64,000 bases of DNA. It comes from Macrostomum lignano (Eukaryota). Made by a program: the position numbers and the translations under genes. The notes beneath the pieces were generated by a model, which worked only from the letters and a program-made list of their open reading frames with translations, made no database searches and was not told the DNA's origin. Location of the stretch: assembly GCA_002269645.1 (NCBI GenBank), contig NIVC01000665.1, forward strand, positions 248,001 through 312,000, in the 5' to 3' direction. Positions 57,814-63,315 of this stretch are shown here, piece by piece. Positions within the stretch are counted from its first letter, which is position 1. Every line of letters starts with the position of its first letter.

Positions 57814-60800
57814 ATGTCCACAACGGCCTCCAGCCGTCACCTGCTGAATGAGTTCTGCGGCTACACCACCGCCCACGGTCTCGGCAGGTTCAGCGAGCAG
57901 GCGGGCACGCTGGGCAAAGCCCTGTGGCTCTGCTTCCTGCTGGGCACCTACGGCGGGTTCACCTACCACATGTACACCCTGGGCCTGCAGTTCGCCAGCG
58001 TGCCGCTCTCCACCAGCCTGTCCACCTCGCTGCCGTTCGAGTTTCCCGACGTGTACTTCTGTCCGACCGACACCGTGACCATGAGCCGGCTGACTTATCA
58101 AGCAGACAGCAACTCGGTGATCAGCAACAGCAGGTGCAATTCGGCCTGCAAGATGAGGGACCTGCTGTTCAACATCCTGTCTGAGAGTGCCGAAGGCGCC
58201 GGAGTTTTGCAGTTTGAACTGTCGGCAGCCGCGGTCGCGCTGGGTCACGTGATGTCCCAGGCTGAGGCCAACATCACGGCAGCGCTGCAGTACATGGGAC
58301 AGGGTGAGCCGATCGGGCAGCTCCTGCTCCTTTCTCGCTCTCGCCTTCCCGCTCTTCATCTTCAGGTATCAAATGCATCTTTACCGAAATGCACCCACTT
58401 CTACCCAACTCTTTGTCTCTACTCACAAATCTCTCACTCTCACCCTCCCCTCTCGCTTCTCCTTATTTCGTCGCGCTCCTCTCCCTCTTTCTTCTCCTTC
58501 TCCCTCTCCCTCTCCCTCTCCCTCTCCCTCTCCCTCTCCCTCCCCCTCTCTCTCCCTCTACCTCTCCCTCTCCCTCTCCCTCTCTCTCTCCCTCTCCCTC
58601 TCTCTCTCCATCTCCCTCTCCCTCTCCCTCTCCCTCTCCCTCTCCCTCTTCCTCTCCCTCTCCTCCCTCTCTCCGTTCTCCCCTTTCCCCTTTCTCCCCA
58701 CTCTTCCTCTCCCTCGCCCGTCTCCCTCTTCCTTTTTGCATTGTGTTTGAGAGATTTTCTTGACTTCAAACCAGTGCAAAGTCACCCAAGTCAAACACGA
58801 GCTATCAAGGCCATTGGCCACTGCCCGCCACCTCCAGCGACATCAACGTGCCGGACCAGCCAGTCGGGTGAGGAGTACTCAGGCAGCCTGGCCTCGGTGC
58901 CCATCTACTCGGGCGAGACAGTCGGCCTGTCAGCCAGCTTGGAGCCCTTCGTGAGCTACAGCGACTGCATTGGCTGGAATGAGGCCGCCAGGGAGCTGCA
59001 GGCGGCCGGACTGCGCCAGCTGGCTGGCAGAATCCTCGCCGCTGGCTTCCCCGACAGCCACCGAAGCTGCAGGCAGCCGCCCGGCCTGCCGCTCACCGCC
59101 TTCCACGACAATGCGACGCGTGAGTTGTTGGCTGCTCAATGGATTCGATTGGCTGCTAGGGCGTGGTGAGATTAGTTGCTGAGGTAGTGAGATTAGTTGC
59201 CAAGGCAGTGAGATTAGTTGCCAAGGTGGTGAGATTAGTTGCCAAGGTGGTGAGATTAGTTGCCAAGGTGGTGAGATTAGTTGCTGAGGTTAGTGAGGTT
59301 AGTTGCTAAGGCAGTGAGATTAGTTGCTGAGGTTAGTGAGATTAGTTGCCAAGGTGGTGAGATTAGTTGCTGAGGTAGTGAGATTAGTTGCTGAGGTAGT
59401 GAGATTAGTTGCTGAGGTGGTGAGATTAGTTGCTGAGGTGGTGAGATTAGTTGCTAAGGTAGTGAGATTAGTTTCTGAGGTAGTGAGATTAGTTGCTGAG
59501 GTAGTGAGATTAGTTGCTGAGGTGGTGAGATTAGTTGCCAAGGCAGTGAGATTAGTTGCTATGGTGTTGAGAACAAGGACAGCGACCGCCCTACTCAAAC
59601 CGGGGTCGAACGACCGAACTGCTTAACTCTCTCAACTTCAGGCCCGCTACTCGCCTCAGTTGGCTGCCTGCCGTTCAACAGCAGCGGGGCGAACTTCACG
59701 GAGCTCTGCCTGAACGATGAGCTCTACGATTTGACTCAGGAAATTTGCGCCCACTGTTGCTATGGACGCGGCTACAGCCATATGGGACTCATTGGCAACC
59801 GGTGCCATTGCTCACCTGGCCTGGTCACTGGTGGCACCTGGTCAGCCTCCTCGGCCTTTGGGTGCGTCAGCGAGTGCCCGGGAAATTATTCCCAGATCTG
59901 CGGCTCCGTCCGCGACCAGCTGATGAGCGTCTTCAGGCTTGCGGATCCCAGTGAGCGGATGAGTATCTGTCTGTCTGTCTGTCTGTCTGTCTGTCTGTCT
60001 GTCTGTCTGTCTGTCTGTCTGTCTGTCTGTCTGTCTGTCTGTCTGTCTCTGTCTGTCTGTCTGTCTGTCTGTCTGTCTGTCTGTCTCTGTCTGTCTGTCT
60101 CTGTCTGTCTGTCTGTCTGTCTGTCTGTCTGTCTGTCTGTCTGTCTGTCTGTCTGTCTCTGTCTGTCTGTCTCTGTCTGTCTGTCTGTCTGTCTGTCTGT
60201 CTGTCTGTCTGTCTGTCTGTCTGTCTGTCTGTCTGTCTGTCTGTCTGTCTGTCTGTCTGTCTGTCTGTCTGTCTGTCTGTCTGTCTGTCTGTCTGTCTGT
60301 CTGTCTGTCTGTCTGTCTGTCTGTCTGTCTGTCTGTCTGTCTGTCTGTCTGTCTGTCTGTCTGTCTGTCTGTCTGTCTGTCTGTCTGTCTGTCTGTCTGT
60401 CTGTCTGTCTGTCTGTCTGTATTAGCGCCGCAGATGCTTTGCCTAAAAACGCCCCTGGACCGGCGGTTTCAGACAGGAAGCCTCTGTACCTGCCGTACCG
60501 GTCATCAGTGAGCAGCTTCAACAGCGGTCCTTACTGCTTCTATCGAGGCGACGGCGGGAGGCTGGCGGCCACGTACTGCAATGTTCCTTACTGCCGTGAG
60601 TTCCGCCACTGTCTTTAAGTCATATTTAGTCACTCAGTCAGCTTCATGATCTGTTTCACAACAGCTTCATTGAACTCTCTACTAAAACGAACCCTCAGCC
60701 CTGTCAGCCAGGTACGACTGCTTGAACGCAGACGTGGACGGCGTCTTCAGCAGCCGGCAGCTGCAGCGGTACACCGGATTTAAGCGGGAGTCCAGACGCC

Positions 60801-63315
60801 GAGAGCTCTGCATGAACTGGGCGCAGCTCAAGGCTGGACTGGAGTCTGGGCAGCTCAACTACCCGGTCACCTATCCTGGAGCGGTAGCCTGTGAGTCGAA
60901 GAGTTTTGAAACCATCGTTAAGCTGCAAAACGTGATTTATGGCTACAGCATCTGACCCCCCCCTCTAAAACTTTCTCTGCCAGACAAAGTTACAAATGTC
61001 AGCATTGAAACGTCAGACATGGAGCTGAATCACTCCTACTGCCGACCGGCTAAAGTTGTGCTCAACTACAATTTTCTATTCAATGATGGAAGCTTTGTAA
61101 ATCGGTAACACTCGAAATGATGTATATTTGCTTGAGCTGGAGTTGGAGCAGGTAACTAGTTCATGTTATGGTTGGAGCAGGTAACTAGTACATGTTATGG
61201 CTGTCACAAATCTCCAACCGCAGACGCGTCATTGCGATCGACTCCAGCTCGCCAGTCTGCGCCTACGTGATCGGCGGAATCACAGACTTTAACACCTGCG
61301 AATTGGACACCTGCCGTGAGTTGCAATTGAGTCACTGGACACACTTCGCACCCGACAGGGACAAACCCAAAGTTGCAGAGTGTGTAGAGACGCCTGTTGA
61401 TGTGCGCTCGTTCGAGCTTTTGTCCTGATGCTTTAATAAATCTCAAAAGAAAGTATTGCAAGTCGAGAAAAATTTATTCATGCCCTTTAAAGATTTTCTT
61501 GGCTTTATATTACCGGGCGTGTTTTGATGTAGTTTATTTATGAGTAACTCTAAACTAGCCAAACTGGCCTACCCCGATGTACGCGGCCTTGTGTACATTC
61601 TCTCTCTCTCCCTTGGCATGACAATATTCAGTCGCGATCTATTCTAAGTTTTAAGCCTAGTCACTTGCTATCTCTTAAGCCTATATAATGATCTCACCAG
61701 CTATCGGATAATAATAATAACAATAATTGATTACACCTACCCAAATGGCCAGATGTGCAACTGACAGCTCAGCCGCAGCTATTGCGCGGCGCATCTGAAG
61801 GCTGCGTACGGCTGTTCAGTCCAAGGACTGGGGGGTCGCCACACACACAGCCTCAGTTACCCCACTGGCACCCATTTTACAGCTGGGTGAACTGAAGCAA
61901 TGCAGAGTTAAGCGTCTTGCTCAAGGACACAAATTGTTCCGAATGGGATCGGGAACCTCTAGGCTACAACCCTAGCCATTGATGATGCAACGTCTAGCAA
62001 AAAGATGCGCGAACCCGTTCTCCAGACGGCACCATCCGAGCCGTGGCGAGCGTCATCCGCGACCGGGTTGGCGGTGACCAGCTGGCCAGGCAGTTCGGCA
62101 GCAGCCTGGGCATCGGGCTCACCCACTGCAGGTTCGCCGGACGGCCCTGCTCGCTGCTCAACTTCCAGACGATGCTCCATCCTCAGCTGGGCGCCTGCCA
62201 CTGGTTCAACAAGTCGAACTTTGCCGAGCTTCTGTCCACTAGCAAGGCCACGGATGCTCGTCTGACGTTCAGCTACTTCACGGACTCAACTGACACCTAT
62301 GGAAGCCAGTTCGCCAACATGAGCAAGACGGCCGCCATCCTGAACTCGGGGCTGCTGGAGTCAGGCGATGCCGAGAGTGCCATGCGGGTGAGACGGCTGT
62401 GGAATATGCGAGCACAATGCCATCGAATTGAGAGTGCATCCTGCACTTACCACATGTAGATAGACTGGGCCTTTTGCTAGCTAATGATACTACTATTCTT
62501 CAGGGGTCTGTTCAGAGTTTTTTGCACATACTTATTGCAAAGCGCCATCTCTGAGCTCTCATTGGCCACGAGCTTTGTCTATGGCCAAATCCGACAGATC
62601 TTGACGCTTCTTTATTGCATCGATGTAAATTGTACAAATATCGCATATTGCCTGTCCAAAGTCTCAAAATCAAGTTTTATGAAGTCTATTTTAATCTAAT
62701 GTCAATCTAATCTAATCTAATCTACGAATCTAATCTCAGTCTAATCTAATATAATCTAATCTAGTCTAATCTAATCTAATCTAATCTAATCTAATCTAAT
62801 CTAATCTAATCTAATCTAATCTCATCTAATCTCAGTATAGTCTAATCTAATCTAATCTAATCTCATCAAATGTCAATCTAAGCTCAGTCTAATCTACTAA
62901 TATAATCTAATCTAATCTAATCTAATCTAATCTAATCTAATCTAATCTACTAATCTAATCTAATCTAATCTAATCTAATCTATTCTAGTCTCAGTATAGT
63001 CTAATCTAATATAATCAAATCTCATCAAATCTCAATTTAATCTAATCTAATCAAATCTCATCAAATGTCAATCTAATCTAATCCATTTGAACCTCATCTC
63101 ATTCAGGTGGCATTCGTGCCCACAGGCCAGTACCCGCGCCTCTCCGACACGGTGGCGGTGAGCCCCGGCCAGCACGCGGAGCTGAAGCTGCGCTATGACC
63201 GCAGCGTCCGGTACCCGAAGCCCCCCGGCCAGCCGTGCGCCCGGACTCTGCCGGCGGTCAGCTACGCCCTGCCCACCTGGAACACTAGCTGGAAATATGT
63301 TGCTCGACTGCCATG
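57814..63315 (+). CDS. DEG/ENaC (ASC family) channel subunit with inserted kringle-like and WSC modules; 3' part not resolved in window
   Basis: Exons 57814-58303, 58838-59119, 59642-59950, 60434-60595, 60699(or 60708)-60890, 60984-61104, 61224-61315, 62026-62387, 63107-63315; GT-AG with phases 1,1,1,1,1,2,1,0. ENaC motifs: FC..TTAHGL, TM1, [13 protein letters not shown]...F....HP.LG.C..FN, MRVAF...YP......VSPG...LKL. Confidence 0.88.
58440..58735 (+). repeat. (CTCCCT)n pyrimidine tract (ENaC intron 1)
   Basis: Direct reading. Confidence 0.92.
59165..59560 (+). repeat. 21-bp minisatellite GTGAGATTAGTTGCTGAGGTA (ENaC intron 2)
   Basis: Direct reading. Confidence 0.93.
59965..60421 (+). repeat. 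(CTGT)n filling ENaC intron 3
   Basis: Direct reading. Confidence 0.96.
61709..61972 (-). mobile_element. tRNA-CORE SINE with internal deletion in the tRNA head (copy C), ENaC intron 7
   Basis: Same CORE, body and (ATT)n tail as copy B; lacks about 37 nt between the A and B boxes. Confidence 0.88.
62695..63085 (+). repeat. (TCTAA)n pentamer repeat (ENaC intron 8)
   Basis: Direct reading. Confidence 0.94.

Follow-up and report, generated by a model that had tools for sequence, protein, structure and literature searches.

A probable DEG/ENaC subunit gene of Macrostomum lignano with a kringle-WSC cassette in the finger region

Introduction

To our knowledge, Kremen1/2, with a kringle-WSC-CUB ectodomain, form the only well-known family that combines kringle and WSC domains. 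In yeast Wsc1, the WSC domain mediates the clustering of the sensor. Among the DEG/ENaC channels, the nematode degenerins MEC-4 and MEC-10 bear additional extracellular Cys-rich or regulatory segments in their variable region. In ENaC, a family-specific additional finger domain, known as GRIP, is located between alpha1 and alpha2 and controls gating (PMC6197857). The finger alpha1-alpha3 corner houses the FMRFamide pocket and is a general gating hot spot, and the idea that degenerins are tethered to the extracellular matrix has also been mentioned (PMC11026163). In oocytes, neuropeptides elicited no currents from three other M. lignano DEG/ENaCs (PMC9234716).

The window analysed here, a stretch of 64,000 nucleotides of M. 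lignano DNA (contig NIVC01000665.1), contains a gene that, taken as a whole, is probably best explained as the 5′ two-thirds of a DEG/ENaC subunit gene with a kringle-WSC cassette. The 3′ third, including TM2, is beyond the window.

Gene Model

The gene comprises nine exons between positions 57814 and 63315 of the forward strand (Table 1), all with GT-AG introns, which after splicing form one open frame of 726 codons. The nine-exon frame of the original prediction was thus borne out by canonical borders, an open frame and colinear M. lignano proteins, and a probable tenth exon was added to it. The motifs quoted in that prediction are all present; the insert, estimated there at about 385 residues, is shorter, with 1119 nt or 373 codons in exons 2–7. 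In tblastn with two M. lignano proteins, exons 1–5, 8 and 9 were matched independently and in order (E 1e-46 to 1e-10 with the protein P0001, described below), which excludes chance; exons 6 and 7, without a tblastn match of their own, were positioned from the protein alignment with the M. lignano relatives. For exon 5, acceptors at 60708 and 60712 were considered and 60699 was preferred, because the length of the resulting CPLSARYDC equals that of CPISPGFDC and CSASGTYDC in the paralogs. The probable exon 10 was not matched by tblastn of M. lignano proteins; its length and position agree with the P0001 exon encoding aa 740-771 (QSVNITELKNTADWAKKTKILESIL...), with weak similarity.

Table 1. 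Exons and intron repeats of the window gene.
Feature	Position	Strand	Description
Exon 1	57814..58303	+	ATG at 57814; phase 1 end; 53% identity to P0001
(CCTCTC)n microsatellite	58478..58733		intron 1
Exon 2	58838..59119	+	282 nt, phase 1-1; kringle 1 N-part; Cys1, Cys2 (DCIGW), Cys3 (SCRQP)
21-bp minisatellite GTGAGATTAGTTGCTGAGGTA	59166..59560		intron 2; 18.7 copies
Exon 3	59642..59950	+	309 nt, phase 1-1; entire WSC domain in a single exon
(TCTG)n microsatellite	59966..60420		intron 3; 116 copies
Exon 4	60473..60595	+	123 nt, phase 1-1; kringle 1 C-part; Cys4 (GPYCFY), Cys5-x4-Cys6 (YCNVPYC)
Exon 5	60699..60890	+	192 nt, phase 1-1; linker and kringle 2 start; Cys1 (YDC), YTG, Cys2 (LCMNW)
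Exon 6	60984..61104	+	121 nt; kringle 2 middle; IETSD, Cys3 (NHSYCRP), expanded Cys3-Cys4 loop begins
Exon 7	61224..61315	+	92 nt, phase 1 end; kringle 2 end; Cys4 (SPVCAY), Cys5-x4-Cys6 (TCELDTC)
Exon 8	62026..62387	+	canonical ASC again: last finger segment, HCRFAGRPC...GACHWFN (palm, beta-ball); tblastn E 1.6e-23
(TAATC)n microsatellite	62692..63083		intron 8; 78 copies
Exon 9	63107..63315	+	ASC extracellular domain continues; tblastn E 2.9e-16 and protein alignment
Probable exon 10	63643..63741	+	(W)DTSINLAMLYSTPNWIDKIEILKTILAAKETG; AG/GT borders, correct phase

Several introns are rich in simple repeats. Every unit of the intron-2 minisatellite contains a donor-like GTGAG, and an array similar to this minisatellite is found at another M. 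lignano locus (L001, 20849-20981).

The Channel Part and the Position of the Cassette

The window protein matches Pfam ASC with 69.8 bits (cutoff 23.6, E 3e-19), residues 14-99 corresponding to profile positions 1-89, and P0001 does so with 131 bits. The DEG/ENaC motifs HG, FPxxxxCP and GxCxxFN are found in the channel part; exon 1 encodes a short N-terminus that contains the HG motif (TAHGLGRF), TM1, the post-TM1 strand FPDVYFCP and about 75 finger residues. The cassette follows TM1, the first palm strand and these finger residues, about 30 residues ahead of the C-F-G-x-x-C strand, and is placed among the finger helices. Its insertion point appears to lie later in the finger than that of ENaC GRIP.

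The best solved-structure matches to the channel part are those of FaNaC (PDB 7yvb, E 8e-12; 8on7, E 4e-10). P0001 10-97 aligns to FaNaC 66-155 and P0001 580-613 to FaNaC 207-240; the P0001 stretch orthologous to exon 8 aligns to the same FaNaC segment and to ASIC5 184-231. P0001 also contains the G-I-S of FaNaC in TM2, and the FaNaC ligand site is at the finger alpha1-alpha3 corner. However, where the cassette family has about 480 residues FaNaC has about 50, and it lacks both kringle and WSC. The GRIP domain of ENaC is likewise an additional finger domain controlling gating, but it is a short beta-sheet, released by proteases, with no shuffled kringle or WSC module. In MEC-4 and MEC-10, the additional segments are not kringle or WSC and the tether comes from separate proteins.

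The WSC Domain

Exon 3 alone passes Pfam PF01822 with 30.5 bits (cutoff 27.8), the whole window protein reaches 27.5 bits and the paralogs 39-43 bits. In the PDB profile search, the fungal WSC 7pz2 was matched with E 5e-7 and the Kremen1 WSC with E 8e-6. The kringle C-terminus of Kremen1 also aligns weakly to GPYCF...YCNVPFC. Nevertheless, the domains of Kremen are serial, with CUB and a single TM after them, whereas the cassette has its WSC inside a kringle, no CUB and an ion channel as host; since the fungal WSC matches at least as well as that of Kremen, nothing points to direct descent from the latter. The serial order kringle-WSC-kringle initially proposed has to be abandoned, as the WSC exon interrupts kringle 1 between Cys3 and Cys4.

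The Kringle Segments

Against a kringle alignment, hhalign gave 98.2% (E 5.9e-14) for kringle 1 without the WSC, spanning the whole kringle profile, and 97.3% for kringle 2, with 0.5% for a WSC control; the alignments run end to end with six Cys aligned in each kringle. In an exhaustive search of 1.84 billion proteins with the family profile, six matches fell at profile positions 224-290 (E 1.7e-9 to 1.2e-7), all six being bona fide multi-kringle proteins. A kringle HMM built from them scored the window protein with 31 bits, in collinear pieces on both sides of the WSC, against maxima of 9.1 bits in 1000 shuffles and 5.1 bits in 87 WSC-only controls, the kringle set behind the HMM and hhalign tests having itself been picked for its resemblance to the family profile. 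Of the 44 PDB matches obtained with the kringle-2 profile, 40 were kringles, the top 11 included; with kringle 1 the PDB profile search reached only E about 1.5. Paralogs just 25-50% identical keep every one of the 12 kringle Cys as well as the WSC Cys.

Pfam Kringle gave no match on the window protein and remained sub-threshold in three paralogs (16-23 bits, cutoff 34.3). Each segment has about 135-145 residues instead of the usual 80 or so. AlphaFold gave a pLDDT of 32 for the whole cassette and of 86.7 for kringle 2, the latter from a kringle-seeded alignment; Foldseek of this kringle-2 model against the PDB retrieved no kringle (best E 0.095). Kringle homology is thus supported by the sequence tests; given the Pfam and Foldseek results, we read the segments as derived, loop-expanded kringles, of a fold that Foldseek on the model did not confirm. 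The two kringles of the original prediction are supported as homologs with all six Cys each, while the Pfam threshold was missed and Foldseek on the kringle-2 model retrieved no kringle; in the same domain searches, ASC and WSC pass. As a whole, the claim that WSC and kringle-type modules stand in the finger of a DEG/ENaC subunit is supported by Pfam for ASC and WSC and by profile-profile and reverse searches for the kringles.

When both segments are read as kringles, the Asp-x-Asp and Trp that form the classical lysine site in plasminogen numbering are replaced. Lysine binding, cited in the original prediction as a property of kringles, is therefore not transferable here, and classical lysine binding by these kringles is unlikely.

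Relatives and Origin of the Cassette

The window protein is colinear over 98% of its length with the uncharacterised M. lignano protein P0001 (BOX15_Mlig007204g1, 1052 aa; 42% identity, E 6e-186); P0002 (Mlig034226g1) is likewise colinear. These two, P0153/P0007 (Mlig006398g1/Mlig013355g1) and UniProt A0A1I8IV52, A0A1I8IYW4, A0A1I8H6Q0 and A0A1I8HMR1 have the order ASC-N, kringle 1N, WSC, kringle 1C, kringle 2, ASC-C of the window gene, its Cys framework and its introns around the WSC exon. The M. lignano relatives differ in their sequence (25-57% identity per exon) and in that their kringles are unannotated, the automatic names being 'WSC domain-containing protein' or 'hypothetical protein'. 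Exon 4 is the most conserved exon (63% identity to P0001). With 28-63% identity for the cassette exons vs 38-53% for the channel core, the former are conserved to the same degree as the latter. The GenBank CDS of M. lignano come from an RNA-seq-guided transcript assembly (PMC5730564), so the channel-cassette junctions are transcript-supported in those relatives.

At least eight uncharacterised M. lignano clusters (50% identity; several partial models) with the cassette are deposited in NCBI/UniProt, and the search for whole-cassette relatives outside M. lignano found none, all being M. lignano paralogs. No publication on cassette-bearing channels was found in the searched literature. The statement that no ENaC of this architecture had been described therefore holds for that literature, not for the databases.

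The module boundaries are all phase-1 introns and the entire cassette is phase 1-1, which makes exon shuffling the most economical origin; the introns around the kringle-1N, WSC and kringle-1C exons are common to the window gene and L001. Intron phase thus suggests that shuffling was behind the cassette: a kringle pair may have been inserted into a phase-1 intron of a channel gene, and a WSC exon into a phase-1 intron within kringle 1.

Alternative Explanations and Proposed Mechanism

Some results would fit a lineage-specific disulfide-rich fold in the segments flanking the WSC, with CxxW, CRxP, PxC and CxxPxC convergent or a foldless remnant: the missed Pfam threshold, the Foldseek search, the almost doubled length and the weak PDB result of kringle 1. 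We hold this to be very improbable, as hhalign aligns both segments end to end with their six Cys, the reverse search for that profile part retrieves true kringle proteins only, kringles dominate the kringle-2 PDB matches, and shuffled and WSC-only controls score much lower; moreover, Foldseek has little power for small domains poor in regular secondary structure, and inserted long hairpins dominate the model. The chances are slimmer still that the cassette exons stay outside the mature channel mRNA, as a separate nested gene, always-skipped exons or a decaying paralogue copy. Skipping is conceivable because the cassette is phase 1-1, so that exons 2–7 can be left out with the frame kept; the gene's 3′ part lies beyond the window, and Macrostomum genomes have many duplicated copies (PMC5730564). 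Nonetheless, no separate start codon, signal peptide, stop or TM is found in the cassette, the 10 exons are free of stops and frameshifts with canonical splice sites and all 22 structural Cys kept, and the joined arrangement recurs in the transcript-derived CDS P0001, P0002 and P0153.

A more serious alternative, although in our judgement an unlikely one, is that the cassette acts as an internal regulatory or assembly module, either an autoinhibitory finger cap like ENaC GRIP or a clustering or trafficking device like the WSC head of Wsc1. Its location in the same general region as GRIP and the missing classical lysine-binding residues (plasminogen numbering) would agree with it. On the other hand, no conserved furin or dibasic site occurs in the cassette, the kringle-2 RRR of the window protein being absent from the paralogs, and WSC and kringle modules elsewhere mostly bind partners.

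We tentatively prefer, at somewhat less than even odds, to regard the cassette as a module, built into the channel, that binds a glycan, the matrix or a protein, an idea that draws on the roles of WSC and kringles elsewhere and on the position of the cassette. Seven of the ten N-glycosylation sequons are within or beside it, and an assembled trimer would bear three such glycosylated cassettes, each of about 40 kDa, at the upper outer corner of its ectodomain. Relatives use this corner for FMRFamide binding (FaNaC), for the protease-released GRIP (ENaC) or as a proposed matrix-tether site (mechanosensory degenerins). Occupancy by the partner, or its pull, might then be relayed by the finger helices to the thumb and the gate, and a ligand of matrix, glycan or protein nature could plausibly gate or tether the channel. 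Unpublished in the searched literature, the cassette channel would represent a variant of the known DEG/ENaC family.

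Gene Model and Exon Structure

The window is eukaryotic in character, with short G+C-rich exons lying among A+T-richer introns that are full of micro- and minisatellites. Starting at the ATG at 57814, a single open frame of 726 codons is obtained by joining nine exons, all bordered by canonical AG/GT sites, and every motif quoted in the original prediction is found in it. The frame continues in a probable tenth exon, after which the gene runs off the window, so that TM2 lies outside it. Exons 2–7 form the insert, referred to here as the cassette, which comprises a putative kringle 1 (exons 2 and 4), a WSC domain (exon 3) and a putative kringle 2 (exons 5–7). 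The existence of the insert was correctly predicted; its size is 1119 nt (373 codons), not about 385 residues. The acceptor of exon 5 is best placed at 60699: an acceptor at 60712 is ruled out since it breaks the frame, and one at 60708 because the linker would then be three residues short of the length seen in every paralog. A candidate exon 11 at about 63884–63980 (FRASGC...) was likewise rejected, since its phase does not fit that of exon 10 and it terminates in a stop. Exons 2, 3, 4 and 5 are each of phase 1-1, as are exons 5–7 taken jointly and the cassette as a whole, a pattern that module shuffling would be expected to leave.

Two proteins of Macrostomum lignano, P0001 (BOX15_Mlig007204g1, 1052 aa) and P0002, were retrieved when 5.8 billion proteins were searched. 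P0001 is 42% identical to the window protein, in an alignment that covers 98% of the latter (E 6e-186). The three-way alignment of these proteins is colinear over every proposed junction. In tblastn comparisons of P0001 and P0002 with the raw window, exons 1–5, 8 and 9 were matched separately and in order, and exons 6–7 were positioned via the protein alignments. At L001, the locus of P0001, the introns flanking the exons of the N-terminal part of kringle 1, the WSC domain and the C-terminal part of kringle 1 occupy the same alignment positions as in the window gene, and identity between this gene and P0001 is 25–57% per exon, which makes the window gene an unannotated paralogue or else the orthologue of a related species. 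As judged from its sequence, the window gene is more than a chance reading, and the observation of a channel gene with a kringle/WSC cassette is confirmed at that level.

Features of the window and their positions
Feature	Positions	Strand	Remarks
Neighbour gene	3-2486	+	LRR plus fibronectin-III protein
Retrotransposon pol ORFs	3388-5937	-	RT, RNase H, integrase zinc-binding, integrase core; Ty3/gypsy-type order
Neighbour gene	23880-24854	+	TTC39-like TPR protein
Neighbour gene	30391-33264	+	glutaryl-CoA dehydrogenase exons; best match of an exon 76% identical
Neighbour gene	40446-43494	+	Zic/Gli-type C2H2 zinc-finger gene
Satellite	49346-55217		5.9 kb, 20-bp unit CCAGTTGATCCCAGTAGCGC, ~298 copies, 91% matches
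SINE-like element	55480-55740		
Minisatellite	57056-57465		21-bp unit GGCGCCAAAAGTAATGCCTGC, 19.5 copies
Exon 1	57814-58303	+	spliced frame
Exon 2	58838-59119	+	spliced frame
Minisatellite	59166-59560		intron 2, 21-bp unit GTGAGATTAGTTGCTGAGGTA
Exon 3	59642-59950	+	spliced frame
Exon 4	60473-60595	+	spliced frame
Exon 5	60699-60890	+	spliced frame
Exon 6	60984-61104	+	spliced frame
Exon 7	61224-61315	+	spliced frame
SINE-like element	61725-61975		intron 7
Exon 8	62026-62387	+	spliced frame
Exon 9	63107-63315	+	spliced frame
Probable exon 10	63643-63741	+	frame continues

Several repeats surround the gene. The large satellite gives rise to long minus-strand ORFs that are spurious, and a minisatellite lies in the presumed promoter, 350 bp 5′ of the channel ATG. 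The minisatellite of intron 2 starts just 3′ of the true exon-2 donor, gtgagttgttggctgc, which its unit resembles, so that this intron bears about 19 tandem donor-like GTGAG sites; an array about 70% identical to it is present at 20849–20981 of L001, near the paralogue. There are two copies (87% column identity) of a SINE-like element, about 250 bp long and with a 3′ end that resembles an antisense tRNA; some 50 bp separate the end of the intron-7 copy from exon 8. A copy 66% identical is found at 2472–2643 of L001, and this element, together with the minisatellite type that L001 also shares, points to a macrostomid. Decay of the retrotransposon is probable, given that its pol ORFs are split over different frames.

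The Channel Part and the WSC Domain

The assignment of the host protein to the DEG/ENaC channels was borne out by the Pfam ASC model (PF00858), which scores 69.8 bits over two stretches of the window protein (cutoff 23.6, E 3e-19) and 131 bits on P0001, and by the diagnostic motifs. The pre-TM1 HG motif, TM1, the FPDVYFCP strand and the HCRFAGRPC...GACHWFN block are all present in the spliced frame, and the three motifs other than TM1 are invariant in the three-way alignment. TM2 of P0001 reads GLWSGISVLT, with the G-x-S motif, and is aligned to TM2 of FaNaC; among solved structures, the channel part of P0001 is closest to the FMRFamide-gated channels 7yvb and 8on7, with ASIC5 and ENaC next. 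The predicted WSC domain also stood, since exon 3 alone reaches 30.5 bits against a Pfam cutoff of 27.8 (PF01822); the score is borderline within the whole window protein (27.5 bits) and 39–43 bits in the paralogs. Exon 3 holds ten Cys, enough for the eight-Cys WSC framework, and those at window residues 280, 293, 296, 297, 312, 314, 332, 336 and 344 are invariant among the three aligned sequences. Against the PDB, the family profile matches a fungal WSC (7pz2, E 5e-7) and the WSC of Kremen1 (E 8e-6).

Residues 10–97 of P0001 align to residues 66–155 of Aplysia FaNaC, and residues 580–613 to 207–240. The span between these anchors is about 50 residues in FaNaC but about 480 in the cassette-bearing family, where it consists of about 75 finger residues, the cassette of 373–388 residues and about 30 residues before the C-F-G-x-x-C strand. 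This alignment places the cassette among the finger helices alpha1–alpha3. The corner in question forms the FMRFamide pocket in FaNaC and is reported to matter for gating throughout the superfamily, the matrix-tether sites proposed for mechanosensitive members included (PMC11026163). ENaC has its GRIP domain between alpha1 and alpha2 (PMC6197857).

Two Putative, Derived Kringles

Splicing the nine exons and searching Pfam, the check suggested in the original prediction, gave the open frame, ASC and WSC, but left the Kringle model (PF00051, cutoff 34.3 bits) below threshold. No match to it at E<=10 was obtained on the window protein or on either Cys-rich segment (segments 1 and 2, from kringles 1 and 2, respectively), and in three paralogs it scored 16.1, 18.9 and 22.7 bits, always on the N-terminal YTG...CxxW part of segment 2. 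A phmmer search of the PDB with the cassette retrieved nothing relevant. Profile methods were more informative. An HMMER profile built from the M. lignano cassette gave 439 matches among 1.84 billion representative proteins. Six of them were best on profile positions 224–290 (E 1.7e-9 to 1.2e-7), that is, the end of segment 1 and the start of segment 2, and each of the six is a genuine multi-kringle protein (Pfam Kringle E 1e-45 to 1e-99). A custom HMM built from 25 kringles of these proteins scored 31 bits on the window protein, against 9.1 bits for the best of 1000 shuffles and 5.1 bits for the best of 87 WSC-only Cys-rich proteins. Its matches are collinear, with HMM positions 2–16 and 23–60 in exon 2, positions 60–87 in exon 4 and the WSC domain between them, while positions 10–61 match exons 5–6. 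In hhalign, segment 1 without the WSC columns was aligned to kringle profile positions 1–89 (98.2% probability, E 5.9e-14) and segment 2 to positions 8–89 (97.3%, E 2.1e-11), the WSC control giving 0.5%. A MAFFT alignment of segment 2 with the 25 true kringles brings the six Cys, YxG, CxxW, N[FY]CR, PxC and CxxPxC into register; alignments that combined the family with both WSC and kringle sequences were left out, because MAFFT pulls kringle pieces onto WSC columns. The kringle set behind the custom HMM, hhalign and MAFFT results was chosen by similarity to the family profile, a bias from which the PDB search is free. In that search, the segment-2 profile gave 44 matches at E<=10, of which 40 were kringles, including the top 11, led by tPA kringle 2 and the ROR1 kringle (both E 0.002); segment 1 had weak C-terminal matches to the kringles of neurotrypsin and plasminogen.

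Structure prediction was less favourable. AlphaFold reached a pLDDT of 32 for the whole P0001 cassette, from a two-sequence alignment, and of 86.7 for P0001 kringle 2 from a kringle-seeded alignment. Foldseek found no kringle in the PDB for the kringle-2 model, the best match having an E of 0.095 and the matches being insignificant and of unrelated folds (e.g., RNA polymerase beta and CsgG). Of the claim of two kringles, the sequence homology and the six Cys of each stand; the Pfam cutoff was missed, and Foldseek leaves the kringle fold, with its 1-6, 2-4 and 3-5 disulfides, a prediction only. That the Cys-rich segments are not real kringles would agree with the Pfam and Foldseek results, but is very improbable given the profile and PDB matches; moreover, all 12 kringle Cys are invariant among paralogs that are only 25–50% identical. 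Kringle homology of both segments is well supported by the sequence comparisons.

The two predicted kringles are strongly derived, with about 135–145 residues versus about 80 in compact kringles, and with insertions after Cys1, in the Cys2–Cys3 loop and, above all, in the Cys3–Cys4 loop. The serial order kringle–WSC–kringle originally proposed has to be abandoned, as the WSC domain sits inside kringle 1, in the Cys3–Cys4 loop directly after CRQP, and kringle 1 falls into kringle register (hhalign) once the WSC columns are removed. At the equivalent site, kringle 2 has its largest insertion (25–30 residues, window exons 6–7), which AlphaFold models as a long beta-hairpin continuing that of the kringle itself (residues 91–121 of the P0001 model). 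We know of no earlier case of one extracellular module nested inside a kringle. Kremen-type receptors, in contrast, are single-pass proteins with kringle, WSC and CUB in series, whereas the host here is a two-TM channel; no Pfam match to CUB was found in the window protein.

In classical kringles, the lysine site is formed by Asp55/Asp57, Trp62 and Trp72, with the Asp-x-Asp carried by the Cys3–Cys4 loop. In the cassette, CRNPDxD reads as CRQPPGLPL and CRPAKVV, and PWC as PYC and PVC. Both the Asp-x-Asp and the Trp residues are replaced in the two kringles, so that binding of lysine motifs, a kringle property cited in the original prediction, should not be assumed.

Distribution of the Cassette

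A word-indexed homologue search found only two family members, and an exhaustive search was needed for the others. Among the best 150 of the 439 profile matches, the combination of cassette and ASC is limited to M. lignano proteins, which form at least eight clusters at 50% identity and include several partial models. In the source records these proteins are called 'WSC domain-containing protein', 'hypothetical protein' or 'Amiloride-sensitive sodium channel'. The searchable literature contains no paper that joins WSC or kringle to DEG/ENaC or mentions the M. lignano gene IDs. The statement that no ENaC of such architecture had been described holds for that literature; the proteins themselves were already in public sets, where they had drawn no comment. 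The cassette channel is a variant within an established channel family. Three other M. lignano DEG/ENaCs have been expressed and gave no peptide-gated current (PMC9234716).

Two further proteins are worth recording. The M. lignano fragment P0027 (145 aa) is 70% identical to exon 2 (58843–59118); the second half of the exon (about 60 residues) has three differences from it and the first half is much more divergent, a pattern that a chimeric gene model, or gene conversion between paralogues, could explain. P0099, from an ENA metagenome contig (1084 aa), carries seven kringles (Pfam Kringle E 7e-99) ahead of a rhodopsin-type 7TM receptor domain (7tm_1 E 1.5e-18); to our knowledge, no such kringle–GPCR fusion has been described.

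Possible Function and Significance

The variable finger corner is where protons, peptides, proteases and force all act to gate DEG/ENaC channels. How force or the matrix reaches this corner has long been unanswered, because the candidate tethers are distinct proteins that are themselves ill defined. The cassette of this channel-family gene is conserved, rich in glycosylation sites and disulfides, and located at the gating corner, and it has evolved no faster than the channel core. With a chance that we put slightly below even, it may be a partner-binding module: it would bind a glycan, matrix or protein partner, and occupancy or pull would be relayed through the finger to the gate. Alternatively, and somewhat less likely, it may be an internal regulatory, clustering or trafficking module. 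Less probable still is a receptor head fused to the channel, where binding of, or pull by, a secreted protein or matrix glycan would directly open or close the Na+ channel.

That the cassette is absent from the mature mRNA, or that the window copy is decaying, is very unlikely. Skipping of the cassette would preserve the frame, since its overall phase is 1-1. On the other side, the GenBank CDS of the assembly that includes P0001 derive from a genome-guided RNA-seq transcript assembly (PMC5730564), so the junctions between channel and cassette exons are transcript-supported in M. lignano.

If the cassette did prove to be a receptor head, it would represent a new gating modality for DEG/ENaC channels, and the tether model of mechanotransduction could be tested with a self-contained protein. 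The reach of the finding is limited, as cassette relatives were found in one flatworm species only. The cassette cleanly illustrates two processes, the shuffling of exons into a channel gene and the nesting of one domain within another, here a putative kringle, and recognisable adhesion or recognition modules built into the finger of the M. lignano-type subfamily would make gating by force or matrix tractable to test.
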